From IMG/VR virus record IMGVR_UViG_3300037042_002125, positions 1 through 64,000 of that record: a stretch of DNA of 64,000 bases; one strand, given 5' to 3'. The position numbers and the translations under genes were made by a program. Numbering within the stretch: the first letter of the stretch is position 1; each line of letters starts with the position of its first letter. Of the stretch, positions 11,057 to 48,382 are shown one piece after another. The notes under the pieces are model-generated. The model was not told the DNA's origin, did no database searches, and saw only the letters and a program-made list of their open reading frames with translations.

Positions 11057-11104
11057 AATTGTTGGGACGATGGCACAATGATAAATACATTAAGGGAGAA
11101 ATGT

Positions 11105-11353: not shown

Positions 11354-11356
11354 GGT

Positions 11357-31563: not shown

Positions 31564-32385
31564 CTAGAATATCCTTGTACGGACGTTCTCGAAACGGTGT
31601 GCCTTGATCAAAGGGAAATAAATTGTTCGGTCAATGAAGTCATCTACTTCCAATCTTGTCGCTAGTGGATCGCCTGGGACGCGCACATGGCCGTCAATGT
31701 CGATCTCAAATCCAATGCGAACACGGTACCGGTTGAGGAACCGTACCCACATACGAATACGAGGCGGGCGTACAAACTTGACGTACCTGTTGTTCGTCAT
31801 TTTGTACATGCGAGGCATGGGGGAGGTTGTTAGCCACTTCTCAAATCCGTCTGCGACGTCAGTGTCCATTGGATATAGATCAGCCCAGGAAATGAGAGTC
31901 ATTCCGTTGTCATTGCGAACGTATTCCCGGAAGGCTTTGCGAACTTTAACGCGTTCAAACAGCTTGGCTTCGTCTGCATACTGCACCAACAAAATACGCG
32001 CGTACCTGACAGCATCTTTAAAGGCTTCGTTCTCAGACACTTCCATATTGAGATCAATAGGATCAACACCCAATGTCTCGCAATCGTTCATGAAGTTCTG
32101 GATTGTGTTAGCCCAGATTTCGTTAATAGTTCCCCAGCTCTTGACTTGTGCCTTGTAGTCCTCGCCTTGAAGCATCTCATTCCAGATAGGTCTAGCGAGT
32201 TTGCTAAACGACCTTGGGTAAGCGTCTTGAAAAGGCAAACGTGCCTGGTACTTAGCAGGCACGCCAATGAGAGTCAAATCTGTCAGTTTGTCGATCGCCG
32301 AGTCAGGTTTGTTGGTGTAGCTATACGGATCAGTACGACCAGGAACTGGTAGCAGATCCGATTTTACTAACAGTTTGATTGCCAT
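31564..32385 (-). CDS. hypothetical protein (MAIKLLV start)
   Basis: Start chosen at MAIKLLVKSD, just after the upstream stop. Confidence 0.75.
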   Translation of the reverse strand: MAIKLLVKSDLLPVPGRTDPYSYTNKPDSAIDKLTDLTLIGVPAKYQARLPFQDAYPRSFSKLARPIWNEMLQGEDYKAQVKSWGTINEIWANTIQNFMNDCETLGVDPIDLNMEVSENEAFKDAVRYARILLVQYADEAKLFERVKVRKAFREYVRNDNGMTLISWADLYPMDTDVADGFEKWLTTSPMPRMYKMTNNRYVKFVRPPRIRMWVRFLNRYRVRIGFEIDIDGHVRVPGDPLATRLEVDDFIDRTIYFPLIKAHRFENVRTRIF

Positions 32386-32392
32386 GATTGTT

Positions 32393-33070
32393 TTAGTCGT
32401 TAAATATAAATTCAATCTTGGAGGCAGAACCTCCGCCAGTTACTGACAGAACATACTTCTCATCATGAGACCATTCTTTGTATCTGTCATCATAAAGCCA
32501 ACCTGCATCTGTCAAAATTTTATCGACCCCTTTAGGGGAAGTGTGAACAATCAAATGGTTATCGCCATAACGTTCACAGTTTACGCTACTGTCTGTAAAC
32601 AAGTGTATCACGTCTTTCTTAAGACGTTTTAGATCAGCAGTGTCTGCGATAACTAACAGTTTGATTGCCTTTTGATTGTTAGATGTTTCTTCATCAAGGG
32701 CAACCAAAGATTTGCCAAATACGGTGGGTCCGGAAGTCTCTATCAAACGTGCTGTGCTCTTAATTTTGTCAAGAGCTTTCTCCGCTTGCCCTTGTGTTTT
32801 AAACGTAGCATCTGGACCTGGACCAAATTGGCCGGTCTTTCCACCTTTGTCTATACTAAAGGTGCCAAGTATCCACACGCCTTCATTGAAGTCTGGACCT
32901 ATGTATCGGATAGTATCCCCAACTCGTTTCGCCTTATGTATGTCTGCAATTGATACTTCATCTCCACTCTTCTTAGCCAATTTTAGAAGAAGGTCTACAA
33001 CTGGGCCCTTAGGAGACGCCAAAGTTTGCAGACGTGCGAGTGCTTTGATTTTGAGTGGTTGGATTGACAT
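32393..33070 (-). CDS. leader-bearing multi-module hypothetical protein
   Basis: MSIQPLKIKALARLQTLA; internal STARLIETSG and AIKLLVIAD segments. Confidence 0.75.
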   Translation of the reverse strand: MSIQPLKIKALARLQTLASPKGPVVDLLLKLAKKSGDEVSIADIHKAKRVGDTIRYIGPDFNEGVWILGTFSIDKGGKTGQFGPGPDATFKTQGQAEKALDKIKSTARLIETSGPTVFGKSLVALDEETSNNQKAIKLLVIADTADLKRLKKDVIHLFTDSSVNCERYGDNHLIVHTSPKGVDKILTDAGWLYDDRYKEWSHDEKYVLSVTGGGSASKIEFIFND

Positions 33071-33105
33071 GGCGTGTTTCCTTTGTAAGTGAGAGTTATG
33101 TTGGG

Positions 33106-33588
33106 TTAAGAGTTACTGTGACTATGTCCGAAATGTTTCTGTGCTTGGGCCAAACGTGCAATACTGGGTTCGTCTTTCAGAAGTGCGTCAAGGCCGTAAT
33201 GCCTGCGTTCTGTTGGGATATGATCTGGGTGGCACCAAACGTGCCCGTGTGTCTCCCAGTTCAACGTTGGATGAAACTGCTGGGGCACAATCCCAAGGAA
33301 ATTGTGGAACTTTAGCTTGGGTTCATCATAGGTGTAGATCGGGATTTGAGTCATCTTGCCTTTGTAGCCCAACTCTTCTTCGATCTCACGCCGAGAGGCT
33401 TGCATCGGGTCTTCACCAGGTTCGATTTTGCCACCCGCTCCGCACCATAGGTTAGGATCGACTACATCCGATGATCGGTAGACCACCAGGACGTTGCCCG
33501 TGTCAGCTGCAAATATCAGGGCACCTGCTGCCTGCACTTGCTTTCCATCTTGTCCAGCGTACTGAACATTTTTTTCTTTGATTGCCAT
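33106..33588 (-). CDS. Nudix hydrolase
   Basis: GGKIEPGEDPMQASRREIEEELG Nudix box. Confidence 0.92.
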   Translation of the reverse strand: MAIKEKNVQYAGQDGKQVQAAGALIFAADTGNVLVVYRSSDVVDPNLWCGAGGKIEPGEDPMQASRREIEEELGYKGKMTQIPIYTYDEPKLKFHNFLGIVPQQFHPTLNWETHGHVWCHPDHIPTERRHYGLDALLKDEPSIARLAQAQKHFGHSHSNS

Positions 33589-33611
33589 GATGTGGTCTAT
33601 CCTTTGTTGAT

Positions 33612-33971
33612 TCAGTATCCGTTGTAGCTAACAGTCTCAAGGGCTCCAGGGCTCAAATAAACGTGGAAAGAACCACTGTAGCGGCCAAAATTACCACCCC
33701 AGGCTCCGCTATAGGTATCAGGATACTTTGGATCGCTTTTTAGATTAAGACCTTGGGGGGGTCAACTAAAAAATCAATAATCTTTTGGCGTTCTTCGTCA
33801 CTCACTTTCTTATCCGAGAATTCCCAACGCCAGTCTGCGCCTTTTGTAGAGCGTACTCTTTTGAAGGAAATCCCTTCCCCCTTTCAAAAAGGATTCAAGA
33901 TGTTTCCCACCCAGGCTTTTCATCTTAGGGGCAGCTAAAGTTTGGAGACGTGATAGTGATTTGATTGCCAT
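33612..33971 (-). pseudogene. leader-bearing ~119-aa gene broken by two compensating homopolymer indels
   Basis: MAIKSLSRLQTLAAP...; removing one base in the G5 run (~33877-33881) and adding one in the C7 run (~33755-33761) gives one open frame to TGA 33612. Confidence 0.65.
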
Positions 33972-33996
33972 GGTTGTTCCTAAAGTTAAAACTCTA

Positions 33997-34365
33997 TTAC
34001 TTTCTGGGAAAGAAATCTATGAAACTTTTGAAGGATGGGCGGTGGTCTAAATGTAATTGCATTTTTACACCTTGTGGATCCCTCCACGCATAAGCTGACC
34101 AGGCATACTCAGGTCCTTGTCCTGCTGCTCTCCCCCTCACTGGTTTGGCATTGTGTTTAGTTTGGAGAGTTTCAAGAATGATCTGCTCTTTAGCTTTAGG
34201 TACAACTACAGTGATACAATAGTCATCATCTGTTGTGTTGGTTAGCCTGCACTTTTTAACAGAAAATCTTAGATTCTTTTTTATCCAATCTTTTGCATCC
34301 TGCTCGGTAAATAAAACCTGTGCAGCCAAACTTTGGAGACGGGCGAGGGCAAGTGTCTTGATCAT
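33997..34365 (-). CDS. leader-bearing hypothetical protein
   Basis: MIKTLALARLQSLAA. Confidence 0.75.
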   Translation of the reverse strand: MIKTLALARLQSLAAQVLFTEQDAKDWIKKNLRFSVKKCRLTNTTDDDYCITVVVPKAKEQIILETLQTKHNAKPVRGRAAGQGPEYAWSAYAWRDPQGVKMQLHLDHRPSFKSFIDFFPRK

Positions 34366-34369
34366 AAGG

Positions 34370-35059: not shown

Positions 35060-35106
35060 GACGTGATTTTTTCTTGGTGTTGTGTTTAGTGTGTATCTTA
35101 TAACCG

Positions 35107-35376
35107 TTAGCCCCCGTACTTTCTTGACCCAGTTGCTTTGATTTTTATATCTGTGAACGTACCAGTGCTTTCACTGTGTATCCTTATGTAGCCAGATTCT
35201 TTATCAAGAGCATTTACCTGAGGTTCAGCGTCGTATCCTTTTGCCTTAAGAGCAGTTGCGCCTGCTTTTAATACTTGCCAAACTATTTTCCGCATGTCTT
35301 TAGGTTCTTTACCCTTTGCAGCCGTTGTCTTGAGACGAGCCAAAGCCATTTGTGCGATTTGTTTGTTCGATTTCAT
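35107..35376 (-). CDS. leader-bearing hypothetical protein
   Basis: MKSNKQIAQMALARLKTTAA. Confidence 0.75.
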   Translation of the reverse strand: MKSNKQIAQMALARLKTTAAKGKEPKDMRKIVWQVLKAGATALKAKGYDAEPQVNALDKESGYIRIHSESTGTFTDIKIKATGSRKYGG

Positions 35377-35414
35377 GATGGTGTTACCTTTAGTGATAAT
35401 TGATGTTTGAAACC

Positions 35415-35843
35415 TCAGTCGCGACTACCTTTAAAGCCAAAATCTTCTAACATAAGGATAGCAATGTTACTCATTCTCTGGACTGTAACGTTAAAAGTTA
35501 GATCTTTGTATTTTGCATTTTCTGCGTAGGCTAGTTTCTCACTTTTATCTTTAAAAGTGGCCTTAAATGTCTTCTGACAAAATTCTTTGAGTTTGGCGGC
35601 CTCCGTTGCAGCCTCATCTCTAGACTCAGTCTTGAATGTGTGGGAGAACATACTCCCAGTAACTACCCGTAATTCCTTAACAGAAACGGCTTTTGCTATA
35701 ACAACAGACAAAGCGATGAGAGCTCTCATCCTGTCTATTTCTGTTTGCATCTGTGCAATGCTTTCTTCTAAGTCAGACTTTGCAGCCGTTGTCTTGAGAC
35801 GGGCAACTGCCATACGAGCGATTTGTTTGTTTGATTTGATCAT
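35415..35843 (-). CDS. leader-bearing hypothetical protein
   Basis: MIKSNKQIARMAVARLKTTAA; start chosen by similarity to neighbour. Confidence 0.75.
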   Translation of the reverse strand: MIKSNKQIARMAVARLKTTAAKSDLEESIAQMQTEIDRMRALIALSVVIAKAVSVKELRVVTGSMFSHTFKTESRDEAATEAAKLKEFCQKTFKATFKDKSEKLAYAENAKYKDLTFNVTVQRMSNIAILMLEDFGFKGSRD

Positions 35844-35922
35844 GATGTGTTTCCAATAGTTAAAAATTAGGAATTGGGTAGGGTCCACCTTCAATAGAAA
35901 GCAGACCCCTAAACCTGTTAGA

Positions 35923-36756: not shown

Positions 36757-36831
36757 GATAATTTTCCAGTACAAAAGTTAAATGATAAATGTTGTGGGTG
36801 AGTGTTGGTCTGTCTGTGGTTTAGAAAATGT

Positions 36832-37386
36832 TTAGGTCAATACATCTTCCTCCATATCCATATCCACATCGTCTTCGAGTTCTTCATCGTCTAAGTCTTC
36901 GAGACCTGACAGTTCGCCCTCTTCATCCAAGTCGTCTAAGTCGTCCAGATAAGGATCAATTCCCTGATCTTGAACAAGCAGACGATTTATGCGTGTGTCT
37001 AAATCTCCTACTGACATACCAAGTAGCTCAGCTAGATCGTTGATCATGCCGTTCGACAGGTTAGGTTCAAATAAGAAGAGCGCCAGCATAAACAGATCAA
37101 GCGTATCCCTGTGTAGATCATGATCTTCTGGATCTTCTGGATCTTCTGGATTGAAGTCATGAAGGACCTCATCTTGATACAGCAGTTCAGAAATCTTGGC
37201 CTCAAATTCATGTGGCTCAAAACCAAGAATCCTACCCAAGTAGAAAACTTGCTCGTCTGTTGGGTCAGGGAACGCGTCGAGAAAGGAGTAGATTACCGTA
37301 TCTACATCGACGTCCTTTTCAAGGGGAGGTGGTGTAGGCAGGTTTGGATTTGCCGTACTAGGCGGCAACTTGGTTTGGGCGGACAT
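36832..37386 (-). CDS. very acidic protein with an internal two-copy helical repeat
   Basis: DPTDEQVFYLGRILG vs NLSNGMINDLAELLG; D/E-rich tail. Confidence 0.75.
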   Translation of the reverse strand: MSAQTKLPPSTANPNLPTPPPLEKDVDVDTVIYSFLDAFPDPTDEQVFYLGRILGFEPHEFEAKISELLYQDEVLHDFNPEDPEDPEDHDLHRDTLDLFMLALFLFEPNLSNGMINDLAELLGMSVGDLDTRINRLLVQDQGIDPYLDDLDDLDEEGELSGLEDLDDEELEDDVDMDMEEDVLT

Positions 37387-37453
37387 ATAGGTCTCCGGAT
37401 TGATAGTGGAACATTGGACTCGAAGTCACTATTAAATTACTGTAGGCAACGAT

Positions 37454-37819
37454 TTACCGCCAACCAGAAAATTTTGATTTGGGCGCAGTAGATACAAGCA
37501 TAGTCAGAGACCTAATAGGTGGGACATATGGTCCGCTCTTCATGTGACCATGCTTGGGCCTCTTGGCATGACACTTGTCGCAGCAAGTACCTAGGTTGGC
37601 TCGGGTCGTTGTCCCACCGTCTGCTATGCGTACCAAATGGTGAACGTCATGGAAGATATTTGCCTTAGGTTGCTCAGGTGCGCCACAGAAGATGCACTTG
37701 TGACCATCCCTTTGCTTTATGATCTTGCACAAGGCAAACCACTCAGCCTTGGAGCCGTATCCATCGCGGACTATCCGTGTAACCCCGCTTGCTCTGTGTC
37801 GGAAGAATGGTTTTGCCAT
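37454..37819 (-). CDS. HNH endonuclease
   Basis: RDGHKCIFC..VHH..GG....NL..CCDKCH. Confidence 0.88.
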   Translation of the reverse strand: MAKPFFRHRASGVTRIVRDGYGSKAEWFALCKIIKQRDGHKCIFCGAPEQPKANIFHDVHHLVRIADGGTTTRANLGTCCDKCHAKRPKHGHMKSGPYVPPIRSLTMLVSTAPKSKFSGWR

Positions 37820-37825
37820 GGCCTG

Positions 37826-38203: not shown

Positions 38204-38231
38204 AGAATTCTCCTTTAGTAACTGTTTTTCT

Positions 38232-39716
38232 TTAACGGATGCCCCATCTGGCATTCCACTTACCCCAACCAGTAGCAGGACTCAACGAGATTGCCACAGC
38301 ACCAGCGGCACCACGCATTTGGTTTGTACCATTAGCCGGACCAAGATTGCCGTCACCAGCCATGTGGCCTTTGATAACAAGGTTTTGCTTGAACGGTTTG
38401 ACTTCATTGTCGATTCCTGACTGTATGCTGTCTGCCAACTGAGAGTAGAAACCAGTGCGATCAACATCCAACGATATGGCCTGGCCACTAAAGTTGAACA
38501 CCTTCTCGCCCTCCGCAAGGAACTGAGCACGGAGTGTCATTACCTCCGCAAAACGCAACCAGAACTCTCGCACACTGCCAGTAGCGTTAGTCATTGTGAA
38601 GCCTGTCATCACACCTTGGGCACCATTGAAACCATCACGGCCACGGCGTAAGTATGCAAGCAAGAGTGGTGTGGTAAACAGTAGGTCCTTGCGGTGTGCA
38701 ATGGTAGTAGCACTCTTGTTTACCAAGATCCGCATGTCGTTCACTGCGCTCATGATGGACGGGTTAACAATAAAGATGCGACCGGTTTCCCTCATTTTGC
38801 CAGCAGGGTTAACCTGGTTCCAGCCTGTCCAGACAATCGTGTAGCTCTCAAGAGCAGCAGGCATGTTCAACGGTGATTGGATTACGCCTGCGTACATATA
38901 ACCGTCAGGAGTAAGTACATTGCTATTTACAGAGACTGGTGCCACCACCATGCTGTTTTCCCTGTAGACCTCGAACGTCACATACTCATAAGGTTGATCA
39001 AAAATAACATAAACAGGGATATCATTAAAGGCAAGTTCAACAACATCTTCAACTCCTTCAGGTGTAGTGTTAGGGCCAGTGACGACCAGAGATTCAAACG
39101 AGTAATAGGTCTGCCCGTTGACGGTCAAGCCCCAACGTATTTGGTAGTTCTGCCCAGACAGAGTTGGAACCATGTCAGTGGGTGTGTTGATAACGGCGCT
39201 GCCTGTGATTTTCACATCGCTGCTAAGGTTAACACCTTCATAGGAGTGGGCAACACCTGAGCTATAGACAACACCGTCACGATCAATCAAGCACCATTGG
39301 ATGTTTCCATTGGCGTAATCGAAGGGCAAGGGAAACATGAAGGACACAGAGCCTATACCAGCCTGACCTGCTTCAAGTTCACCCACCAAATCAGAGAACG
39401 CGTCAACGTTCTTGGTCTGATAGTCAGTGGCGAGATTGGAGTTGACCACTACCGCCAATGTCTTTGTGTAGATGTGCGCCTGGTCCGTGTTGACCGTTAC
39501 GTTGATACCGTAGGATTGCAGGTCAGTACCTCCCGACACCTGCAGCTCAATTACAGGTGACGACACAGATAGGACCGTCGTCGCTATCGTGTTGGGGTCT
39601 ATCTGGGTAATGGCGCCCGCGCTGATAACTTCTCCACCGACGAATACGTCTGAGAAGTCGATCTGGACTCTCCGTGTATCCTGGGGAAATTTTACGATCA
39701 CTTTACTAGATTGCAT
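38232..39716 (-). CDS. putative virion structural (neck/adaptor-like) protein
   Basis: Ig-like beta-rich N-terminal part, helical C-terminal part; context. Confidence 0.55.
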   Translation of the reverse strand: MQSSKVIVKFPQDTRRVQIDFSDVFVGGEVISAGAITQIDPNTIATTVLSVSSPVIELQVSGGTDLQSYGINVTVNTDQAHIYTKTLAVVVNSNLATDYQTKNVDAFSDLVGELEAGQAGIGSVSFMFPLPFDYANGNIQWCLIDRDGVVYSSGVAHSYEGVNLSSDVKITGSAVINTPTDMVPTLSGQNYQIRWGLTVNGQTYYSFESLVVTGPNTTPEGVEDVVELAFNDIPVYVIFDQPYEYVTFEVYRENSMVVAPVSVNSNVLTPDGYMYAGVIQSPLNMPAALESYTIVWTGWNQVNPAGKMRETGRIFIVNPSIMSAVNDMRILVNKSATTIAHRKDLLFTTPLLLAYLRRGRDGFNGAQGVMTGFTMTNATGSVREFWLRFAEVMTLRAQFLAEGEKVFNFSGQAISLDVDRTGFYSQLADSIQSGIDNEVKPFKQNLVIKGHMAGDGNLGPANGTNQMRGAAGAVAISLSPATGWGKWNARWGIR

Positions 39717-40189
39717 TGTAATTCTTTCCAAGTTAATTCATGAAAATTAGATATTCTAGTAATATGTTTAGTTTTTGGATTTACTACCCACACCCTTAAA
39801 TCAATGCCTAAACTATCTGCAGCCTTAGCTTTCATTTTGATACGTTTGAAAGTATCGAGGTCCGTTAAACCCACAGTGTACAAGCTTTTAACCTCTATAC
39901 ATATGTCTTTATTCTTGTATTTTATTCGTATGTCTGGGTAGTATAGGCTATCCTTGTTCCGTTTTGGATTGAACCACCATATTTTAGGTTGATCTCTTTT
40001 TCTAACATAAATATTCTTGGCGGGGACTTTCAACTGATTTACTAGAACGCCTAAAACATGACCTTCGTACCCTTGATAAATAAATTCCTTACCTTGCAAA
40101 CATGCAGAATGACGTAAGTATCTACTTAACAAAAATTTATCTGCAATATCTGGATCTTGACTAGGAAAATCTACACCATAGCGACGTTG
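39698..40189 (-). pseudogene. 5'-truncated PD-(D/E)xK endonuclease-like gene
   Basis: YGV..PSQ, QGYE, YYPDI, IEVKS.YT motifs; AT-rich; no convincing start. Confidence 0.65.
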
Positions 40190-40269
40190 GCATCTTCCCA
40201 CTTCTTTTCCAGCTTAGCCTTGGTGCCTTTGCCGTCTTTGACAAGTTTGTTTATGTAGGTATTTGGCAT
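40171..40269 (-). pseudogene. 32-codon partial duplicate of the 5' end of the 42218 gene
   Basis: 40190-40269 vs 42139-42218: 69/80 nt identical by manual alignment. Confidence 0.8.
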
Positions 40270-40271
40270 GG

Positions 40272-41360
40272 TTAACCCCGATTAGCTAAGTAAACGCACA
40301 GATCAAGTCTGTCCTTCCAGGTGCTCGCTATCTTTGCCAACGTGTATTTGCCCATGTCCTTGTACCACATTTTGTATTCTCCAGTGGCATCCCCTTCTCC
40401 TTCCATGTCACGCTCCAAATTCATCATAATGCTTTCACCAATATCCTTTGTGGAACGTTTGGCTAAATCATATGATACGGCTCTTCCCATGGTTGTAACG
40501 CTTAGGATGCTGCCACTGAATTCAGATTCACCAAGACCCATGTTGCTAACAGTGAACATGGCGGCAAAAAACTCCCTCTCATAGGGCTTTAGTGCTCTAT
40601 CCTTGGCTTTAAGTGCCTTTAGAGCACCGCTTGATTTTTTGACTTCACCAAACGCAGATTTGAGAAGATTGTCAAAAGCTTCCTTTGCTTGAGCTGTTGA
40701 AGAGTCTAAATCAAGAGTTATTTTTGTTACTTTAGACGTCTTGTACGGGTTAACTGTCAGATGCAGTGTATGCGGCGTACCTCGTATGCTACGCCCTTTT
40801 GCATCTTCCTCCCTTTCAATGTACACCAAAAGATTTGTGTCCTTTGCTTTGGACATCTTTATCATCAGCAAACCCTCACGAGTAGGCTCCTTAAAAGAAT
40901 ACCCCTTAAGAGACGTGCCCAAGGATTTGAGATCCATTACAGCTAAAAGCTTGTTGGCCTTAGCCACAAGTACCTGGCCTGCTTTTTGATTCTCTTCCGC
41001 GTTTGCTTGTAGAGCCTTGGCATAGGCTTTCATGGCCTTACTTGAAGCTACTTTATCAAGTTCTTTTGGCCACTCCGGTATGCTTTTTATCTTTGCAGCC
41101 AACTTCACCAAACCCTTTGCAATACCTGTTTTGTAGGTAAAAGTTGAAGGACAGTAATCACCATCAAAATCAACTTTAATATCACCAATACTTTGCGGCA
41201 TACTATATGCCGGTAGGTCATCACCCAATATTCTGTTAGTGACCCTTTCCCCCAACTTGTACATCCACTGTGAGATTTTTATCAGAAGAGAAATGTCCTC
41301 TGCAGATATAGTAGGTTTGGCCCCTAAACTTTGCAGACGTGCGAGTGCTTTGATCATCAT
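40272..41360 (-). CDS. leader-bearing hypothetical protein
   Basis: MMIKALARLQSLGA. Confidence 0.8.
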   Translation of the reverse strand: MMIKALARLQSLGAKPTISAEDISLLIKISQWMYKLGERVTNRILGDDLPAYSMPQSIGDIKVDFDGDYCPSTFTYKTGIAKGLVKLAAKIKSIPEWPKELDKVASSKAMKAYAKALQANAEENQKAGQVLVAKANKLLAVMDLKSLGTSLKGYSFKEPTREGLLMIKMSKAKDTNLLVYIEREEDAKGRSIRGTPHTLHLTVNPYKTSKVTKITLDLDSSTAQAKEAFDNLLKSAFGEVKKSSGALKALKAKDRALKPYEREFFAAMFTVSNMGLGESEFSGSILSVTTMGRAVSYDLAKRSTKDIGESIMMNLERDMEGEGDATGEYKMWYKDMGKYTLAKIASTWKDRLDLCVYLANRG

Positions 41361-41531
41361 AGTGTTTCCTTATCAATGAACTTTTTGGGATTTGGCTTTA
41401 TAGCCTGTACGGCCTTTGAACTCTTTCTTATTCAAAAGGTCTGCCTGTTTGGCTGCGTCTTGCTTGGTGAATTTCTTGGGGTTAGATCCACCTAACCAAC
41501 ACGTTACAGTTCGAGTTGACCCGCCTGTGGT

Positions 41532-42218
41532 TTATTTCCAGATTTGCCATATCCCAAATTCTTTTGGTTCTGCTGCCAAACTTTGGAGGCGAGCCAAAGC
41601 GAGTGTCTTGATTTGGGTCATGGTGTTTCCTTCTTCGGTTTCAGGTTCGGGGGTGGTCCATATTTTGGAGTAGTCGTCCATTGTGAGAACGTCTTTCTCC
41701 TTGGAGAGTTTGAGGACGGCCTCCACTACGTCGTGGAGTTCAACATCACCTTTCAGTGTCTCGCGAGCAAGCTCAAGCAAGCGTATGAACAAAGGGACAT
41801 CAACGGTTATTGTGTCGAGTGGGTCTTTTGCTGACAAGCTTACCATAGCAACATCTGCTTTCACTAAAGTTTGAAACACGCTCATAATGTGACTCCATGT
41901 ATCTGCATGACCTGCCTTGTGGACCACGTCTTCTGCCTCACGCCACTTCTGGAGCAAGAACTTCTTGTCGCCTTTACCATCTTTAATTAGCCTAGCCAAG
42001 TAGTGGTCAGGTGGTGGAGGACACATATTGGAATGAGACAACACCAAGCCTGATCCAGCAACGTGAGCCATCTTCTGGAAGATGCTCATGATATACGCCC
42101 AATCTTCTTTGTGTCCTTGTGCGGCAGCGGCTGCCTTTGCATCTTCCCATTTCTTTTCCAACTTGGCCTTGCTGCCTTTTCCCTGTTTGACAAGTTTGTT
42201 GATGTAGCTGTTGGGCAT
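41532..42218 (-). CDS. multi-module protein (two-copy helical domain, DTITVDVPLFIRLLE domain, terminal leader module)
   Basis: Internal repeat Y..KL.K.GKG.K..L..KW..A; internal MTQIKTLALARLQSLAA. Confidence 0.75.
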   Translation of the reverse strand: MPNSYINKLVKQGKGSKAKLEKKWEDAKAAAAAQGHKEDWAYIMSIFQKMAHVAGSGLVLSHSNMCPPPPDHYLARLIKDGKGDKKFLLQKWREAEDVVHKAGHADTWSHIMSVFQTLVKADVAMVSLSAKDPLDTITVDVPLFIRLLELARETLKGDVELHDVVEAVLKLSKEKDVLTMDDYSKIWTTPEPETEEGNTMTQIKTLALARLQSLAAEPKEFGIWQIWK

Positions 42219-42220
42219 GT

Positions 42221-42439
42221 TTATTTCCCAATTGAAGGGTTTACAATTATTTCGTTTAGTTGTAGAACTTTATCACTAGAGCGTGACCACAACCTGGTAC
42301 AGTCATCTAATCTCCTGCGCCTATCAAAGTCTACCTGTTGTTGGACTATACGCCTGTCTTTTATAATTCTTCGTTCTTTCAAGGCGAACGTAGCAGCGTC
42401 ATTCCGCTCGTCTTTTTGTGCTTCTGTATCCTGACCCAC
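42221..42439 (-). CDS. hypothetical protein
   Basis: Fills gap on the coding strand, GTG start. Confidence 0.45.
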   Translation of the reverse strand: MGQDTEAQKDERNDAATFALKERRIIKDRRIVQQQVDFDRRRRLDDCTRLWSRSSDKVLQLNEIIVNPSIGK

Positions 42440-42442
42440 AAG

Positions 42443-42811: not shown

Positions 42812-42813
42812 AG

Positions 42814-43587
42814 TTAGGCCTTGGTAATGGTCCAAAAATCTGCAGACAAAACACGATCAGATAGATAGGCGTAAGGCATTGTGAAGTATCCCCCAAGACC
42901 CCAGTCAACACCCCAGGAGTTGCGTACTAACCCGCGTTGAGTCTCGTCATCATACCCAACGAGCAACACTGCATGGCATCCGTTGCATTTGGCCTTCGGG
43001 CCTGGCATAGGAAGCTCACCAGTGACTGCCACATCCTCAGAGTCGAATTCGTCGTAGACGTCAAAGCAGAACACAATAGGGTAACCAGACGCTAAGGTGC
43101 GCTTAACTTCCAGCATATTCTTGTCTCGGCTGACGCGGGCGTAGGCGCTTATCTTATGCTTGGCCGCCTTATCAAATACTTCGGGTGGAGGACGGATTCC
43201 TACTTTAGCAGCACGGTACGGCCATATTTCCTCCAACGGCGTACCATACTTCTCGACCACCTTGAGGCCAGTACGTATTTGCGTACCCACGTCCTTGTTG
43301 ACGGTGCGCTCTACCACGCGACCATTGTAGAACGGGAACAAACGGCTGAGATCAGAGTAGTGGTGATCGTGGTGATGCTTGATTTCCAGGTACTCCATAG
43401 CCCCAACTATTGAGTTGTAGACACAGCTACTCAAACTCGCCTGGTTCTCTACAGGAGAACAATGTGGGCGCAGATCGACCTTAGCTGGTAAGTCCTCGGC
43501 ATGTTTCAGTTTGAAGAAATCAGATGTGTGGACATATTGGTCGCGAGCGTCATGCGTGTCACGGCTGGCATTAAAACGTTCAAACAT
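42814..43587 (-). CDS. papain-like (C1A) cysteine peptidase
   Basis: LPAKVDLR, NQ....SC, GCHAVLLVGYD, RNSWG..WG..GYF. Confidence 0.92.
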   Translation of the reverse strand: MFERFNASRDTHDARDQYVHTSDFFKLKHAEDLPAKVDLRPHCSPVENQASLSSCVYNSIVGAMEYLEIKHHHDHHYSDLSRLFPFYNGRVVERTVNKDVGTQIRTGLKVVEKYGTPLEEIWPYRAAKVGIRPPPEVFDKAAKHKISAYARVSRDKNMLEVKRTLASGYPIVFCFDVYDEFDSEDVAVTGELPMPGPKAKCNGCHAVLLVGYDDETQRGLVRNSWGVDWGLGGYFTMPYAYLSDRVLSADFWTITKA

Positions 43588-43596
43588 AAAAATCCT

Positions 43597-44052
43597 TTAT
43601 AATTTACCCTTGTAACCCAATTCCTTTAATGCTTTGTCTGCATCAAGGTGTTTTGACTGTGCATACTTACGGAAGATTTCAAAGGTCTTTTTACATCCGT
43701 TTACTTCATCCTCAACAGTAGGATCTTCTTCAGAAAGCCCATCTTCCTGTATGTAGTTCAATGTCTCTAAGGCTTCTTGTACCTTACGTATTACTGCCTG
43801 TGGAAATCTTGGTACCTCAAGAGGCTTACCATCGTCACCACTTAGTGGTAAGAGTTCAAAAGATTTAACCTCTTGGTCTGTTAATTCACGTGTGTAGGTA
43901 ACAATCCCATGTCGTACCCTGTCAATACCTTCACAGTCTTTGTCATACGTGTACTCACCTTTGGGTACAGCCCCTAAACCAGGTGGTCTGTTGACAAGCC
44001 CATACCTGAACTGTTTATTTGCCAAGATTTTGTGAAGTGGTTGGATTGCCAT
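43597..44052 (-). CDS. DarA C-terminal-like domain protein
   Basis: YGLVNRPPGLGAVPKG...RHGIVTY.RELT..EV.SFEL resembles the DarA_C family. Confidence 0.7.
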   Translation of the reverse strand: MAIQPLHKILANKQFRYGLVNRPPGLGAVPKGEYTYDKDCEGIDRVRHGIVTYTRELTDQEVKSFELLPLSGDDGKPLEVPRFPQAVIRKVQEALETLNYIQEDGLSEEDPTVEDEVNGCKKTFEIFRKYAQSKHLDADKALKELGYKGKL

Positions 44053-44054
44053 TG

Positions 44055-44285
44055 TTATTCCTGGTACATTGCATCCGCTTGAACACCATTTAGAATTCCT
44101 GCAACTATTTTGGCATCTTCCTTAGAACAGGAACCTGGTGGAAAATTAAATGTCCAAGTATGGCCCTTAGACTCCCCTGATATGTGCAAAGTCATACCAG
44201 CAGTTACTTTAAGTTTTACCTTAGACATTGAAAGAGACCCTGCGGCTGTTGTAGAATGTAAACGTGCAATTGCTTTGATTGTCAT
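44055..44285 (-). CDS. leader-bearing small protein
   Basis: MTIKAIARLHSTTAA. Confidence 0.7.
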   Translation of the reverse strand: MTIKAIARLHSTTAAGSLSMSKVKLKVTAGMTLHISGESKGHTWTFNFPPGSCSKEDAKIVAGILNGVQADAMYQE

Positions 44286-44300
44286 GATTGTTCCTAAATT

Positions 44301-45152: not shown

Positions 45153-45171
45153 GGTCTGTCAGTCCTTTAGA

Positions 45172-46725
45172 TTACTGAGCTTCATCTTGAATGTAATCCC
45201 AGACCTTATCTGGTATTTGTTCGAGGCTTGATGTATCCATTGAAGAATACCTGTCAACCTTCTTGACTTGAATGTAATCCCAGGCCTTATCTGGTATTTG
45301 TTCGCGGCTTGATGTATCCATTGAAGAATACCTGTCAACCTTCTTGATGTTGTTTTCCAAGAAAGCAGAAGCAAGGCGAATGTGATCGGCAGCGTCACCA
45401 ATTACCATAGCTGCCATACCCAGACCAAAATCCTCTTCTTCGTCAGAGATCCAACCAATAGCATTTTCAGCACTCAGCTCTCCCTTGAACGCATTTTTGA
45501 AGGTAAGCATACCCAAGGAATTCATCTTTGCATCTTTGCCAAGTTTTGCTTTTGGTCCCCTAGCCTTTTCAACAAGTTTGGCAACCTGTTCTACAAACTT
45601 GAGTACTTCCTCAGTACCTTTATAAAACTTTTTGTTCTTCTCGACAGCATTGAGTACCTTAGCGATACTGGCCAAGAAGTCAGCACAAGCTTCTGTAGGG
45701 CCTAAAGCCTTGGCCTTACTGTAAGCTGCCTTGAGAATCTTAGGAGCATTCTGATCTACAATTTTGTAGATTTCTGCCAAGTTATCTTCTTCGGTATCGT
45801 GCTCAAGAACATCTTCAGCAGGTTTTTTGCCTGCGTTCTTGGCAGGTTTGGATTGCTTTGCCAACTTGTTTGCCAGGTCCAAAGTGAGAGTAAACACCTT
45901 GTTAGGTCCAAGCTCTGGGCTTATCATGCGAATCTTTTTGCCGTCTGCTGATTTACGCACACCAAATTTTTCACCAGGGCCAAGGGTCAACTTAGTCCCT
46001 GCCCCAGATTTAAGAGGAAGACTTTTCCCTTTATAGATAAACCAATCATAGGCAGATTCTCCTTTGGGGGTCGCAATGGCCTGGAGGCGGGCACTTGACT
46101 CTTCTTTGATCTTGGTAGTCCTGACTACGGCTGAGTGCATGCCTTTGCCAGCTTTGTAACCTTTTTGGTCATTGTAGTCAGAGGCAAATTTATCAGCCTT
46201 TGCTTTATCAGTAAACGTCTTTAACAGATCGTAGTCAGGGCCGCCTGCCCTATCACCTTTGACCTTGTGGTAGACGTAAAAGGTAGTCGCAATGGCTTGG
46301 AGGCGGGCGAGTGCTTGAATCTGGGTCTTGATTGTAGTCATGGTATGGTCTTCCTTTGATTGTGATGCCATTGCGTTCGTGTCGTCGATGTTGACGGCGT
46401 TGATAAGTGTTACTATCCGTTGGTACCAGCCATCGCATATACCGTCGAGATAGGACGAAAGGTGTTGCATTGCCCGCAAAGCTTCTTGGCGAGACTTAGC
46501 CCCAATGAGATTGGTGTAAGCCTTACGGACATACGGCAAGGCTTTTTCATAAGGGAGAGCCTTTGATCGTCCAGCGTAATCGGTGCTACCAGGTGTGATG
46601 ATCCTTTCCAGAGAATCACCGAGGTGTTCAAGAGCTTCTAGGGCAGCAGGGAACATGCAGTCTTGCGTAGGACCCGCGGTCACAGAATTTTTCCAAGGGC
46701 TAGGTATGTTGGTATTGCTCATCAT
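45172..46725 (-). CDS. multi-module protein with two internal leader motifs
   Basis: IQALARLQAIA and SSARLQAIA; C-terminal 27-aa duplication. Confidence 0.8.
   Translation of the reverse strand: MMSNTNIPSPWKNSVTAGPTQDCMFPAALEALEHLGDSLERIITPGSTDYAGRSKALPYEKALPYVRKAYTNLIGAKSRQEALRAMQHLSSYLDGICDGWYQRIVTLINAVNIDDTNAMASQSKEDHTMTTIKTQIQALARLQAIATTFYVYHKVKGDRAGGPDYDLLKTFTDKAKADKFASDYNDQKGYKAGKGMHSAVVRTTKIKEESSARLQAIATPKGESAYDWFIYKGKSLPLKSGAGTKLTLGPGEKFGVRKSADGKKIRMISPELGPNKVFTLTLDLANKLAKQSKPAKNAGKKPAEDVLEHDTEEDNLAEIYKIVDQNAPKILKAAYSKAKALGPTEACADFLASIAKVLNAVEKNKKFYKGTEEVLKFVEQVAKLVEKARGPKAKLGKDAKMNSLGMLTFKNAFKGELSAENAIGWISDEEEDFGLGMAAMVIGDAADHIRLASAFLENNIKKVDRYSSMDTSSREQIPDKAWDYIQVKKVDRYSSMDTSSLEQIPDKVWDYIQDEAQ
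45186..45347. repeat. 81-bp tandem duplication (2 mismatches)
   Basis: 45186-45266 vs 45267-45347, in frame. Confidence 0.95.
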
Positions 46726-47987
46726 TCATTGTCCATGTTGATAATGTCAATAACGCGGCGCAGTTTCTTAGCGTCAAGACCAAATTGGTCTTGAAGGAAG
46801 TCAATGTCATTCACGCTAACTTTATTCTCAGGCGACAGGTTGGTCAAGGTAAACTTGATTACCTTAGGGTCTGTGCCTTGGTCAATCTTCATGCTAACGG
46901 TTGCCTTCTTGATCTTAGCAAAAATACCCTTAACGTCTTTGAGAAGGGAAACGGCAACCGCTTGTATGTCCTTGGCCTTAACGCCCTTCTTGAGCATAAA
47001 GTTGATTGAGCTAGGGGTGAACTCAATGCTCTCAATGCTCTGGCTAGCCTCAAATTTACCTTTAGGGTAATCATCTGGGTTGAGGTTGTGAGGTTGAGTA
47101 CCGATAGCTGTATAGATGTTTTCCATCTCCAGCATGGTACCTAGCATGGTTGCAGCTTCTTTAGAAGAAGTGACCTTACGACCCAAGGCGTATTTGCCAG
47201 GTGTGGCAAAATCATGCATCACAGTCAAGTAGTAAATTGTCTCTACTTTTGTCAAATCCTTGGTAGGTTTCAATACGCAATTGAACACAATGTAGAACTT
47301 GGGATAGATATTACCTTCGTCATCTGTGAGGCTGGTGAGTTCGAGATAGACGGCAAATGCCAAGTTGCCTTCTTTTGTCTCATACCCGTACATAAAAGTC
47401 TTGTGGGATTTGAACGTCAACTCCGGGCTAACTTGGGTGATTGTGTCTTTAATCAAGTCCTTAAAGTTCTTAGGAGTATGGCGCTCGCCAATGTCACCCA
47501 AGAAGGTAAGTGCCTTATCTAAAGAGGATTTTGCGGTACGTTGCAGGCTTTTGATTGCCTTGAGCATCTCGTTAGAACCGCGGATGCCCCTAAAGTTAAC
47601 CGACGTAGAGTTGTACAGCTTGTCTAAGTCATCGACCTTGTCTGCTATCTCGTCAACGATGGTGAAGTTCTTTCTAAGCACATCGATCTTTGGGATAACG
47701 ACCTTATCAATGATGTCTGTATTGATGGTATTTCCGCCTTTAGGTTTTCTAGGACCTTTAGGTGTGTTTACATCAATGTCAAAGATGATTGACTCGGCGG
47801 CAGTAACAGGAGATTGGACCCTTGAGAATTGCAGCTGGTATTGTTTTATCAAACCATCCAAATCCTGAAGATCATTCTCAATCCCGTCCAGATATTTTTG
47901 CACCTCTTGTAAGGACCGAAATGCACCTTCTGCAATCTCCACAATCCTGGGGACTTGTTTGATGAGGTGAAGTGGTTTAATTGACAT
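46722..47987 (-). CDS. putative virion protein
   Basis: 421 aa, MSIKPLH start, VTAA motif, context. Confidence 0.65.
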   Translation of the reverse strand: MSIKPLHLIKQVPRIVEIAEGAFRSLQEVQKYLDGIENDLQDLDGLIKQYQLQFSRVQSPVTAAESIIFDIDVNTPKGPRKPKGGNTINTDIIDKVVIPKIDVLRKNFTIVDEIADKVDDLDKLYNSTSVNFRGIRGSNEMLKAIKSLQRTAKSSLDKALTFLGDIGERHTPKNFKDLIKDTITQVSPELTFKSHKTFMYGYETKEGNLAFAVYLELTSLTDDEGNIYPKFYIVFNCVLKPTKDLTKVETIYYLTVMHDFATPGKYALGRKVTSSKEAATMLGTMLEMENIYTAIGTQPHNLNPDDYPKGKFEASQSIESIEFTPSSINFMLKKGVKAKDIQAVAVSLLKDVKGIFAKIKKATVSMKIDQGTDPKVIKFTLTNLSPENKVSVNDIDFLQDQFGLDAKKLRRVIDIINMDNE

Positions 47988-48022
47988 AGTTAGCCCTAAT
48001 GATTATTTCTATCAAAATTAAA

Positions 48023-48382
48023 TTATTTTGCGTGTGTGCCAAGATTCCTTAGGCGCATAACCGAGGAAAAGGAACTAGATGGGGCGCTGCTCTTGAAATC
48101 GGTTATCTTTCTCAATTCATCTGGACCTGTGTTGATGTCACTAGGAGGATGATTGCCTGTGTAATCCGTGTTAGGGAACGTCAACGACTCTTCTAATTCT
48201 TTGTCAGTGAAAGATTGGTTGCCTTCAAACTCAATCTCGTAACGCTCTTGGCCTTCGTCCCAACCTTCTGGATCACCGCTGTTCATATCCGGAGCGTTGC
48301 CAGTTCCTTGCCTTAAACCGTCGTTGAAATTGTGTTGCATGTTCGGGGCTTCGTCATACCCTGACAGATGTTTGATGCTCAT
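48023..48382 (-). CDS. acidic hypothetical protein
   Basis: ATGA coupling. Confidence 0.7.
   Translation of the reverse strand: MSIKHLSGYDEAPNMQHNFNDGLRQGTGNAPDMNSGDPEGWDEGQERYEIEFEGNQSFTDKELEESLTFPNTDYTGNHPPSDINTGPDELRKITDFKSSAPSSSFSSVMRLRNLGTHAK

Follow-up and report, generated by a model that had tools for sequence, protein, structure and literature searches.

A short N-terminal leader shared by unrelated proteins of RSL1-like jumbo phages, a candidate address tag for the phage head

About ten unrelated genes beside the head genes of an uncultured jumbo phage begin with the same short leader peptide, and the same leader starts 136 distinct proteins in the head regions of relatives of Ralstonia phage RSL1. 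Most likely, the leader is an address label that loads proteins into the phage head; encapsidation, removal of the leader and ejection have not been tested. The sequence under study, hereafter the window, is the first 64,000 nucleotides of a 222-kb IMG/VR contig (IMGVR_UViG_3300037042_002125) from a distant relative of RSL1 and Burkholderia phage BcepSauron. An earlier note, made from the sequence alone, had listed ten copies of a motif around A-R-L in this region, and its observation proved to be correct: every copy is present at, or within a few bases of, the position given, on the minus strand and inside real open reading frames (ORFs). Table 1 lists the copies and the neighboring genes.

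Table 1. Leader copies and associated genes in the window
Coordinates	Strand	Feature	Observations
33014..33070	-	Leader MSIQPLKIKALARLQTLAS at the N terminus of the 225-aa gene 32393-33070	Orphan cargo; top hit of the profile built from relatives only
32735..32767	-	Weaker internal leader-like copy KIKSTARLIET at about residue 102 of the same gene	13.5 bits, third-best profile hit in the window; suggests that the gene is a fusion of two modules
33930..33971	-	Leader MAIKSLSRLQTLAA of a 53-aa ORF (33810-33971)	May be frameshifted, because an ORF continues in another frame; sequence identical in a second assembly
34321..34365	-	Leader MIKTLALARLQSLAA of the 122-aa gene 33997-34365	Repeat family D1
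35317..35376	-	Leader MKSNKQIAQMALARLKTTAA of the 89-aa gene 35107-35376	Repeat family D6
35781..35843	-	Leader MIKSNKQIARMAVARLKTTAA of the 142-aa gene 35415-35843	With its upstream DNA, a tandem duplicate of the 35376 leader with different cargo (core 82%, upstream 64%, downstream 38% identical)
41319..41360	-	Leader MMIKALARLQSLGA of the 362-aa gene 40272-41360	Orphan with no relative among 5.8 billion proteins
41376..41621	-	Leader with its own RBS and ATG (MTQIKTLALARLQSLAA, 41571-41621), fused in frame to the end of gene 41532-42218	Followed by 12 codons, an in-frame stop (41532-41534) and 52 more open codons (41376-41531); probably a dead cargo gene; identical in a second assembly; no family match for the piece after the stop
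44241..44285	-	Leader MTIKAIARLHSTTAA of the 76-aa gene 44055-44285	Repeat family D2
46285..46341	-	Internal leader with its own RBS and ATG (MTTIKTQIQALARLQAIAT)	At residue 129 of the 517-aa ORF 45172-46725
46069..46116	-	Second internal copy in the same ORF (TKIKEESSARLQAIAT), motif SSARLQAIAT at 46092	No ATG; a KMPT-N domain starts 6 residues after it; repeat family D14
38232..39731	-	Head-tail connector gene in the middle of the cluster	37% identical to RSL1 ORF118 and BcepSauron gp092; anchors the cluster in the head module
43597..44052	-	DarA_C-domain protein	No canonical leader; N terminus MAIQPLHKILAN looks like a degenerate leader; a relative in locus L031 has MRIEAKQRLLAS before the same domain; phrog_1926 "released from the phage upon host infection"
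42814..43587	-	Papain-family (C1) cysteine peptidase next to the DarA_C gene	No leader; possible accessory processing enzyme or cargo
26618..31201	-	1527-aa SNF2-type helicase	Conserved beside the head genes in the clade; its PaBG homologue (1969 aa, ~221 kDa) fits the largest band of the PaBG virion proteome (PMC7412058, Table 1)
46722..47987	-	Homologue of BcepSauron gp094	Conserved backbone; N terminus MSIKPLHLIKQVPRIVEIAEG is a possible divergent leader; repeats D5/D8
48379..49644	-	Homologue of RSL1 ORF115 / BcepSauron gp095	36% identical; conserved backbone gene at the upstream edge of the cluster
31564..32415	-	Homologue of RSL1 ORF128 / BcepSauron gp089	Conserved backbone gene at the downstream edge of the cluster

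To determine whether the motif could have arisen by chance, a possibility that the earlier note had accepted as grounds for rejecting its own proposal, we searched the window for [A/S]-R-L-[Q/K/H]-x-x-[A/G/T]-[A/S/T]. The pattern occurs 10 times on the minus strand between 33.0 and 46.3 kb, compared to a mean of 0.15 (maximum, 3) in 2000 triplet shuffles and 0.02 expected from amino-acid composition, and chance is thus excluded. Seven copies are N-terminal and three are internal (41621, 46341, and 46092, the last placed at ~46095 in the note), and a profile trained only on relatives, which ranked the window's copies at the top, added the eleventh, weaker one. We next examined whether the genes are full-length paralogues, the other outcome that the note had said would count against it. 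All-against-all BLASTP found only the leader; the one weak pair, the 33070 gene against the 41360 gene, had an E value of 7e-5 with the leader included and 6.5 without it. Thus, the sequences after the leader are unrelated, and the cargo is mostly orphan.

The DNA of the leaders was then compared. The pairs named in the note are indeed similar, with a core that is 82% identical for 33037/41342, 34344/41594, and 35340/35804; however, the similarity stops at the edges of a ~39-nt core, and the flanks are 29-32% identical, which is background. Moreover, the invariant A, R, and L use different codons in different copies (GCA/GCC/GCT/TCA, CGT/CGC, and CTG/CTC/TTA). These data indicate that the tag is conserved as a peptide and not as a DNA cassette. 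The AGGAAAC-type ribosome-binding site (RBS) and the M-x-I-K start are also found on neighboring genes that lack the motif (NUDIX, DarA_C, 47987, and 53946) and are therefore generic rather than specific to the leader.

To determine whether the leader is used elsewhere, as the note had suggested testing with a profile search of related jumbo phages, we examined RSL1-like head regions. In these regions, 195 of 2471 forward ORFs start with the leader, compared to 6 of 2127 reverse-strand ORFs, giving 136 distinct proteins in about 84 cargo clusters. The clade consensus is M-K-(L/I)-(Q/E/N)-A-(A/K)-x-R-L-x-A, whereas the leader in the window reads M-x-I-K-A-L-A-R-L-Q-S/T-L-A-A, and the Met sits exactly 7 residues before the Arg in 90 of 135 clade leaders. 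Leader density is 0.174 per kb where the capsid protein is at least 60% identical to that of RSL1 and 0.02-0.04 per kb in more distant or unrelated phages. Most related loci were collected around capsid genes, which biases the impression that leaders lie near head genes; only the whole RSL1 genome and the first 82 kb of the source contig were scanned without that bias. In the complete RSL1 genome, all seven convincing copies (ORF109, 111, 112, 120, 124, 126, and 133) lie within 19 kb, at 58-78 kb of 231 kb, in a region that flanks the connector, helicase, and protease genes just before the capsid gene. Leader-bearing proteins of BcepSauron include gp075, gp077, and gp091. In the window, the leader genes are accessory insertions into a conserved head backbone composed of gp095, gp094, the connector, gp089, and the helicase.

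In L058 and L064, two loci of relatives, the prohead protease itself starts with the leader (MKIYSSSRLK.. and MKIQAASRLK..), and a prohead protease has to be enclosed in the procapsid to work. The L058 protein is 56% identical to the RSL1 protease, and its model (pLDDT 81) has the predicted fold of BFVD proteins annotated as prohead serine protease / COG3740 / XkdF (E = 1e-7 to 1e-10), with the first 22 residues forming an unstructured extension. The protease assignment, made on relatives and not on the source phage, is further supported by a PHROG "head maturation protease" match (E = 7e-113), by H103 and S161, which are invariant in 21 sequences, and by its location beside the capsid gene, although searches returned no Pfam hit, no PDB sequence hit, and no PDB fold hit. 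At the syntenic position just after the protease, 14 proteins share only the R and L of the leader as invariant residues. Other carriers belong to families tied to packaged or injected phage proteins, namely, DarA_C proteins (loci L031 and L061), a NUDIX hydrolase (RSL1 ORF109), and an exonuclease (locus L056). On the other hand, the RSL1-type proteases and the capsid proteins do not carry the leader, so it is not the only route into the head.

We consider it more likely than not that the motif is the core of a procapsid-targeting leader that phages of the RSL1/BcepSauron lineage attach to many unrelated proteins. In this view, the leader would be recognized by a component of the assembling head, which could be the scaffold-like protein encoded between the protease and capsid genes, the N-terminal region of the capsid protein, or the portal; any protein carrying it would be enclosed in the procapsid, probably be trimmed by the prohead protease, and later leave the head with the DNA. 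Internal copies most likely mark places where two leader-bearing genes fused, and they may also serve as cutting marks. Our analysis establishes the motif, its position at N termini, the unrelated cargo, selection at the peptide level, use across the clade, confinement to the head-gene neighborhood, and presence on the prohead protease of some members, whereas the binding partner, encapsidation, cleavage, and ejection are inferred. No leader-bearing protein of any of these phages has been shown in a virion, and no mature N terminus is known for any clade member; the capsid, protease, and scaffold genes of the source phage were not recovered, so the partner was not examined in this genome. Indirect support comes from PaBG, a sister-group phage in which the capsid protein loses about 20% of its mass on maturation and several virion proteins are processed, the processing being reported only in bulk (PMC7412058), and in which the predicted mass of the helicase homologue fits a 221-kDa virion band. 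For encapsidation, the only indirect support is the gene neighborhood, the protease that carries the tag in some phages, and this PaBG helicase. The leader is not more amphipathic than random 12-mers from the same proteins, and the only model that includes a window leader is of low confidence (pLDDT 43).

The interpretation given in the earlier note is thus supported in part. A portable N-terminal leader on diverse cargo encoded among head genes holds, with stronger support than the window alone could give, and the T4 capsid-targeting sequence is the best available analogy. In contrast, the proposed DNA cassette and the special RBS do not hold, and the proposed cleavage near the xAA site has no evidence: the residue after A-A varies (P, K, E, Q, G, or T) and is often proline, which argues against a fixed cleavage site there, and no cleavage rule is known for this protease family. 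Packaging in virions and ejection into the host are inferences, and the DarA_C gene that the note placed in the cluster does not carry a canonical copy.

Alternative roles were also considered. It is possible, though unlikely, that the motif is mainly a recognition or cutting mark for the prohead protease, a propeptide boundary, and that proteins reach the head by other means. Internal copies in the window (46092 and 32735-32767), the KMPT-N domain that follows one of them, similar motifs about 70-90 residues inside RSL1 ORF116, ORF117, and ORF125 that often end in A-A-E, and the maturation cleavage seen in relatives (PMC7412058) are consistent with this. However, given the fixed Met-Arg spacing, cutting there would remove only a dozen residues, which is pointless unless those residues do something first; the residue after A-A is not conserved; the capsid proteins of this clade lack the motif although the PaBG capsid protein is processed; and the L058 protease carries the motif at its own N terminus. 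Equally unlikely in our view is that the leader directs proteins to another shared partner, such as the neck, tail, or baseplate, a phage chaperone or unfoldase, a controlled-degradation system, or a site in the infected cell. Two BcepSauron carriers (gp077 and gp075) flank the tail tube gene, the cluster in the window surrounds the head-tail connector rather than the capsid gene, and no binding partner has been identified; on the other hand, the leader-bearing proteases, the constant position just after the protease gene, and the DarA_C and "released upon infection" families among the carriers speak against it. The leaders also do not resemble secretion or lipoprotein signals, since they are Ala/Leu/Lys/Gln-rich with a single Arg and a mean hydrophobicity of about 0.1 and have no hydrophobic core of 10 or more residues, no twin arginine, and no Cys.

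Conservation at the nucleic-acid level, as a translation-initiation or regulatory RNA element or a recombination cassette that happens to be translated, is very unlikely and already close to refuted. Several copies share core DNA, one adjacent pair also shares upstream DNA, and two internal copies keep an RBS; nonetheless, besides the synonymous codons and the generic RBS, the same peptide is kept in relatives whose capsid and connector proteins are only 37-80% identical and whose DNA gives no match in the phage collection, and a DNA-pattern scan found no other genuine leader copy in IMG/VR. Least likely is that the genes are paralogues of one family or that the motif is a compositional accident; the single weak BLASTP pair is the only support, and it is outweighed by the loss of that match without the leader, the shuffles, and the 84 clade-wide cargo clusters.

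[quoted passage not shown] The leader described here likewise starts several otherwise unrelated, fast-evolving proteins of one phage, but it does not resemble the T4 tag, which is MKTYQEFIAE-like and ends in the L/I-x-E site of gp21. No constant acidic cutting site follows the leader, as Glu occurs after the A-A pair in only 1 of 10 window copies. The protease annotations matched by our model correspond to the HK97-like class and not to the T4 gp21 type. Furthermore, there are many more carriers per genome region (up to 10 in 21 kb), internal copies occur, and in some phages the protease itself carries the tag. The heads of the jumbo phages phiKZ, SPN3US, and 201phi2-1 hold many extra proteins that are processed by the prohead protease and ejected (PMC10052503 and PMC7411985); in those phages, the shared element is only a three-residue cutting consensus, S/A/G-x-E, after long, dissimilar propeptides, whereas here a 12-15-residue peptide is conserved, usually at a fixed distance from the initiator Met. 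RSL1 internal copies (ORF116 and ORF125) and one window copy (41594) end in A-A-E while the other nine window copies do not, an outcome that points neither way as to phiKZ-type processing.

In the phage P1 Dar system (DarA, Hdf, DarB, DdrA, DdrB, and Ulx), head-internal anti-restriction proteins occur, and the N-terminal ~70-90 residues of DarA are removed by the prohead protease Pro (PMC12810830). The window and its relatives encode DarA_C-domain proteins and a very large helicase next to the head genes. However, no shared short leader is known in P1, where incorporation is hierarchical through DarA/Hdf. The DarA_C domain of the window covers residues 13-70 of a 151-aa protein that lacks the DarA N-terminal (hexon-binding) domain, and no DarA-N or Hdf match was found among the cluster proteins scanned. 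Cargo-loading peptides of encapsulins and the C-terminal procapsid-targeting tail of the HK97 protease are also short portable peptides that dock diverse cargo, or the protease, on the inner face of an HK97-fold shell; these are usually C-terminal, have other consensus sequences, and are not removed, and similarity to them was not examined. The polyvalent proteins of phages (Iyer et al. 2017, PMC5512222) have the same domain repertoire, including DarA-type domains, peptidases, NUDIX-like enzymes, and large helicases, and are predicted to be packaged and injected, with peptidase domains proposed to cut them into units. There, the effectors are strung into one giant protein, whereas here they are mostly separate genes, each with its own leader, plus a few fusions that keep internal leaders.

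A further-reaching possibility, which we hold tentatively as somewhat less likely than not, is that the leader is a self-contained address tag for encapsidation that can be read directly from sequence and is used by a whole clade of jumbo phages, comprising RSL1, BcepSauron, and hundreds of uncultured relatives. It would mark more than 80 cargo families, including enzymes and sometimes the prohead protease, and internal copies would act as marks that split fused cargo. If so, the injected protein arsenal of any member of the clade could be listed from its genome alone, and foreign proteins could be loaded into these very large heads by adding about 15 residues.

Proteins that phages carry in the head and inject with their DNA are a main source of counter-defense functions, and they are hard to recognize because they evolve fast and have no relatives. 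A short shared targeting tag has been established experimentally only for T4-like phages. A second, unrelated tag in a large and mostly uncultured jumbo-phage lineage would provide a handle for loading proteins into large capsids and would make the question of what jumbo phages inject directly testable in the culturable relatives RSL1 and BcepSauron. Moreover, it would give a simple sequence test for listing candidate injected proteins in hundreds of genomes, with about 84 cargo families already visible here, and it would show that this solution arose more than once.

To place the leader-bearing genes in their genomic context, we compared the region with other phages at the nucleotide and protein levels. 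The window constitutes the first 64 kb of a 222,078-bp IMG/VR contig, IMGVR_UViG_3300037042_002125 or JGI Ga0393277_0000004, and a megablast search of the region against 50,697 phage records found no nucleotide-level relative. Nonetheless, the head-tail connector gene is 37% identical to those of Ralstonia phage RSL1, Burkholderia phages BcepSauron and BcepSaruman, and Achromobacter phage Motura. Protein comparison with the RSL1 and BcepSauron regions further revealed a conserved backbone on the minus strand, whose members are listed in the table below. In the relatives, the prohead protease and major capsid genes follow the helicase, whereas in the window tail-fibre genes follow it instead. 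The source phage's own capsid, scaffold and protease genes were not retrieved: two capsid-protein alignments, a partial search with a gapped DNA pattern for two invariant capsid blocks, and the best 120 of 430 hits of a profile search did not return the source contig. Extension of the contig by exact-protein look-ups reached 82 kb and found only early and replication genes, and the head genes probably lie near the far end of the contig. The leader-bearing genes are all extra genes inserted between the backbone genes.

Features of the window and their coordinates. For the internal leaders at 41594, 46092 and 46308, the position is the first base of the Ala/Ser codon.
Position	Strand	Feature	Remarks
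1-11400		Low-G+C segment	35-36% G+C, genes on the plus strand; G+C then jumps to 50-57%
26618-31201	minus	SNF2-type helicase	1527 aa; backbone
31564-32415	minus	RSL1 ORF128 / BcepSauron gp089	Backbone
32735-32767		Eleventh, weaker internal leader copy	
33070 (gene start)	minus	N-terminal leader	
33106-33588	minus	NUDIX hydrolase	Backbone
33971 (gene start)	minus	N-terminal leader	53-aa ORF; may be frameshifted
34365 (gene start)	minus	N-terminal leader	
35376 (gene start)	minus	N-terminal leader	Adjacent pair with 35843
35843 (gene start)	minus	N-terminal leader	Adjacent pair with 35376
36832-37386		Very acidic protein	184 aa; Asp/Glu-rich C-terminus; 9-bp tandem repeat at 37122-37151 encoding PED repeats
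37454-37819		HNH endonuclease	Next to the connector gene
38232-39731	minus	Head-tail connector	Backbone
40187-40274 and 42136-42223		88-nt direct repeat	85% identical
41360 (gene start)	minus	N-terminal leader	362-aa protein
41376-41531		Piece after the in-frame stop	52 open codons
41594	minus	Internal leader	Own AGGAA-type ribosome-binding site and ATG (41621)
41532-42218		Gene with a leader fused at its C-terminus	Two copies, by eye, of a ~65-residue unit in 41622-42218
42814-43587		Papain-family (C1) cysteine peptidase	Directly beside the DarA_C gene, inside the cluster
43597-44052		DarA_C-domain protein	Starts MAIQPLHKILAN
44285 (gene start)	minus	N-terminal leader	
45172-46725		517-aa ORF	Two internal leaders; KMPT-N domain
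45186-45347		81-bp tandem duplication	Perfect register; 97-98% identical
46092	minus	Internal leader	
46308	minus	Internal leader	Own AGGAA-type ribosome-binding site and ATG (46341)
46722-47987	minus	BcepSauron gp094	Backbone
48379-49644	minus	RSL1 ORF115 / BcepSauron gp095	Backbone
about 58196-58414	minus	72-aa gene with an Hfq family hit	L228 14055-14273

The source contig itself may be an assembly chimera or a mosaic joined near 11.0-11.4 kb. Its first protein is encoded identically on other contigs, namely, a 166-kb JGI contig, a 50-kb ENA contig, and a 31-kb Logan contig that ends at about window 11.2 kb, where it sits among different replication genes. The Hfq hit was taken from the precomputed annotation of the source contig (the locus designated L228); phage-encoded Hfq is uncommon. 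Within the cluster, the HNH endonuclease is homologous to RSL1 ORF122, which sits in the equivalent place, and the acidic protein, which lies between the connector and the leader genes, could be a DNA mimic or a scaffold-like protein. The cysteine peptidase could be packaged cargo or a processing enzyme, as proposed for peptidase domains of polyvalent proteins.

To verify the motif, a regular expression for [A/S]-R-L-[Q/K/H]-x-x-[A/G/T]-[A/S/T] was searched in the six-frame translation. Ten matches were found, all on the minus strand, all between 33037 and 46308, and all inside real ORFs; seven lie at N-termini and three are internal. Whether the motif exceeds its frequency in shuffled N-termini had been posed beforehand as a point on which the leader could fail; triplet shuffles of the region gave a mean of 0.15 matches (maximum, 3 in 2,000), and the amino acid composition of the region's proteins predicts 0.02. 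Thus, the observation of the earlier note, that a shared ARL leader recurs on about 10 genes of this cluster, holds. The internal copies at 41594 and 46308 look like gene starts that have become fused in frame to the gene upstream. The 41621 leader is followed by only 12 codons, an in-frame stop, and 52 more open codons before the next gene, and is probably a dead cargo gene. A visual resemblance between the piece after the stop and the middle module of the 517-aa ORF was not significant (E = 1.1). Both the in-frame stop and the possible frameshift of the 33971 ORF are identical in a second assembly, Logan SRR11849211, which is 100% identical over 18.6 kb; they are therefore not errors of one assembler, although the reads may come from the same sample.

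That the downstream regions might be full-length paralogs of one family had likewise been named in advance as an outcome that would overturn the leader. All-against-all BLASTP of 25 proteins of the region found similarity only in the leader, and one weak pair, the 33070 and 41360 genes, dropped to E = 6.5 once the leader was removed. The protein of the 41360 gene has no relative among 5.8 billion proteins, and Pfam and PHROGs recognize almost nothing in the cargo parts. The exception is a KMPT-N domain that begins six residues after the second internal leader of the 517-aa ORF, so that an internal leader sits exactly at a module boundary. The tandem duplication in this ORF duplicates 27 residues at its C-terminus (KKVDRYSSMDTSS.EQIPDK.WDYIQ), and an independent Logan contig breaks within the ORF, by our estimate near the repeat. 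The single-sequence AlphaFold model of the 33070 protein had a pLDDT of 43 and was not used. The idea that the leader is an unusually amphipathic helix was rejected, since its hydrophobic moment is 0.26, compared to 0.29 for random 12-mers.

Other possible rearrangements lie around the dead leader gene. The lower copy of the 88-nt direct repeat encodes a truncated 32-aa duplicate of the start of gene 41532-42218 (MPNTYINKLVKDGKG...), and a DUF7487 fragment that lacks its first ~98 profile positions follows in another frame. The two repeats bracket the dead leader gene and the 41360 gene, which looks like a scar of duplication or insertion. By eye, the protein encoded at 41622-42218 contains two copies of a repeated unit (Y-I/L-x-x-L-V/I-K-x-G-K-G ... 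K-K-W ... G-H ... W ... I-M-S-x-F-Q), and its first ~55 residues are 41-47% identical to RSL1 ORF112 and BcepSauron gp098. RSL1 ORF112 has the leader at its N-terminus, whereas the window protein has a leader fused at its C-terminus instead.

We next asked whether conservation acts on the DNA or on the peptide. Pairwise DNA identity among the 10 copies averages 57% in a 39-nt core, but it is 32% in the 42 nt upstream and 29% in the 60 nt downstream, which is background. The invariant Ala, Arg, and Leu are written with different codons in different copies. Only the adjacent pair 35376/35843 also shares upstream DNA, as expected of a tandem duplication followed by cargo replacement. The AGGAAAC-type ribosome-binding site and the M-x-I-K start also occur on neighbors without the motif. 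A second N-terminal motif, M-[S/A]-I-[Q/K]-P-L-[K/H], is shared by the genes starting at 33070, 44052, and 47987, and the DNA around their starts is also similar (repeat families D5 and D8); it precedes a full leader in one gene and decayed or divergent leader-like sequences in the other two. The interpretation in the earlier note is therefore supported in part only: a portable DNA cassette and a special ribosome-binding site are not supported, while a portable peptide is.

A leader-peptide search and a leader-DNA pattern search of IMG/VR returned only the source contig plus chance hits. To determine whether relatives use the leader, as the earlier note had suggested examining with a motif model, we collected about 100 loci around RSL1-type capsid genes from IMG/VR and scanned them with a profile of the motif, which gave N-terminal copies in many distant relatives. 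A simple N-terminal pattern (M, up to 8 residues, [LIVM]-x-[A/S]-x-x-R-[L/I]) matched 195 of 2,471 forward-strand ORFs and only 6 of 2,127 reverse-strand ORFs, yielding 136 distinct proteins; we quote the distinct proteins because the ORF counts include some contigs collected twice. Their consensus is M-K-(L/I)-(Q/E/N)-A-(A/K)-x-R-L-(L/K/Q)-A-(A/T/S), and the initiator Met lies exactly seven residues before the Arg in 90 of 135. One 21-kb locus (designated L051) has 10 carriers, and the cargo parts fall into 84 BLAST clusters. The pattern was refined after hits had been seen, against which the strand control, a relatives-only profile, and a whole-genome scan of RSL1 serve as safeguards. The profile trained only on these relatives, with no window sequence, ranked the window's leaders as its best hits and added the eleventh copy. 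Leader density is 0.174 per kb in loci whose capsid protein is at least 60% identical to RSL1's, compared to 0.02-0.04 per kb in more distant capsid relatives and in unrelated phage DNA. No description of this leader was found in the papers searched, although prior mention cannot be excluded, since these did not include the original RSL1 virion-protein paper (PubMed 20034649) and the RSL1 cryo-EM paper.

Since the related loci were chosen around capsid genes, we also scanned the complete RSL1 genome, the only one scanned in full. The seven convincing leader-type N-termini are those of ORF109 (a NUDIX hydrolase), ORF111, ORF112, ORF120, ORF124, ORF126, and ORF133. All lie between 58 and 78 kb of 231 kb, flanking the connector, the helicase, and the protease, just upstream of the capsid gene; the only other match is a reverse-strand shadow ORF. 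In addition, leader-like motifs ending in A-A-E or A-A-S lie about 70-90 residues inside three RSL1 proteins next to the connector, ORF116, ORF117, and ORF125 (LARLKLQAAE, IRRLQTTAAS, and TARLRLTAAE), and may be internal processing sites. In the 82 kb of the source contig that were scanned, the leaders occur only at 32.7-46.3 kb.

The carriers include the prohead protease itself, which begins MKIYSSSRLK... and MKIQAASRLK... in the related loci L058 and L064. The L058 protein is 56% identical to the RSL1 "head maturation protease" (E = 7e-87). A model built on 21 sequences has a pLDDT of 81, and its first 22 residues, which include the leader, are unstructured. The protease had no match in the PDB by sequence or by fold; only the viral predicted-structure library gave matches, to proteins annotated as prohead serine protease, COG3740, or XkdF (E = 1e-7 to 1e-10). 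In many clade members, the gene directly after the protease starts with the leader, and in an alignment of 14 such syntenic proteins the only invariant residues are the leader's Arg and Leu, while the rest cannot be aligned. Other carriers are DarA_C-domain proteins (loci L031 and L061), an RNase T-type exonuclease (locus L056), and BcepSauron gp075, gp077, and gp091. The N-terminus of the window's own DarA_C protein resembles a decayed leader, since L031 has MRIEAKQRLLAS before the same domain; the protein also matches a PHROG described as "released from the phage upon host infection." The N-termini of the capsid protein (K-V-K-A-S-K-x-P-V-V-A-A) and of the scaffold-like protein (M-A-I-x-T-K-K-K-R-V-L-A-A-E) look vaguely similar to the leader but do not fit its spacing and were not counted. 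The latter N-terminus is conserved in the ~430- to 580-aa protein encoded between the protease and capsid genes (loci L001 to L101) and is followed in most members by H-F-P-N-E-T-T-K-P. From its position this protein is a scaffold candidate, and the "ATPase" label given to RSL1 ORF134 in RefSeq looks doubtful.

Experimental hints come from PaBG, a sister group of the RSL1 genus, in which the capsid protein loses about 20% of its mass on maturation and several virion proteins are processed; the largest virion band is a 221-kDa "helicase-like" protein (PMC7412058). The PaBG homologue of the window's helicase (E = 2e-62) is a 1,969-aa coding sequence, which fits that band by predicted mass and annotation. 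This shows that the conserved neighbor of the leader cluster is a virion protein in a related phage, but says nothing direct about the leader.

Altogether, an N-terminal peptide, mostly at a fixed distance from the Met, unrelated and rapidly replaced cargo, restriction to one capsid lineage and to the head-gene neighborhood, and use by the one enzyme that must be enclosed in the procapsid are best explained by a procapsid-targeting tag working like the T4 capsid-targeting sequence. These features come from the sequences themselves, whereas the targeting role is inferred from them, as there are no virion or N-terminal data for any carrier, and we hold it with moderate confidence. No receptor was identified; the candidates are the ~540-aa protein between the protease and capsid genes (RSL1 ORF134), the ~80-residue N-terminal region of the capsid protein, ORF135, or the portal. 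Removal of the tag by the protease is plausible but unsupported, since the residue after the A-A pair is P, K, E, Q, G, or T in the window and the cutting rule of this protease family is not known.

Other explanations appear less likely. A pure protease-recognition mark would fit the internal copies and the A-A-E endings in RSL1, but it does not explain the fixed N-terminal position, the variable residue after A-A, or why capsid proteins lack the motif, and we consider it unlikely. Targeting to another partner, such as the tail, the neck, a chaperone, or a degradation system, is equally unlikely in our view but is not excluded, because two BcepSauron carriers flank the tail tube gene. An RNA- or DNA-level element is contradicted by synonymous variation and by conservation of the peptide across genomes without DNA similarity, and a single paralogous family or chance is contradicted by the BLASTP comparisons with and without the leader, the shuffles, and the cargo clusters; both are very improbable.

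Internal copies probably record fusions of leader-bearing genes, although whether they are cut is open. The dead and fused copies, the tandem pair with different cargo, and the orphan cargo all point to fast turnover of this gene set. Such turnover would fit an arms-race role, but this last step is inference.
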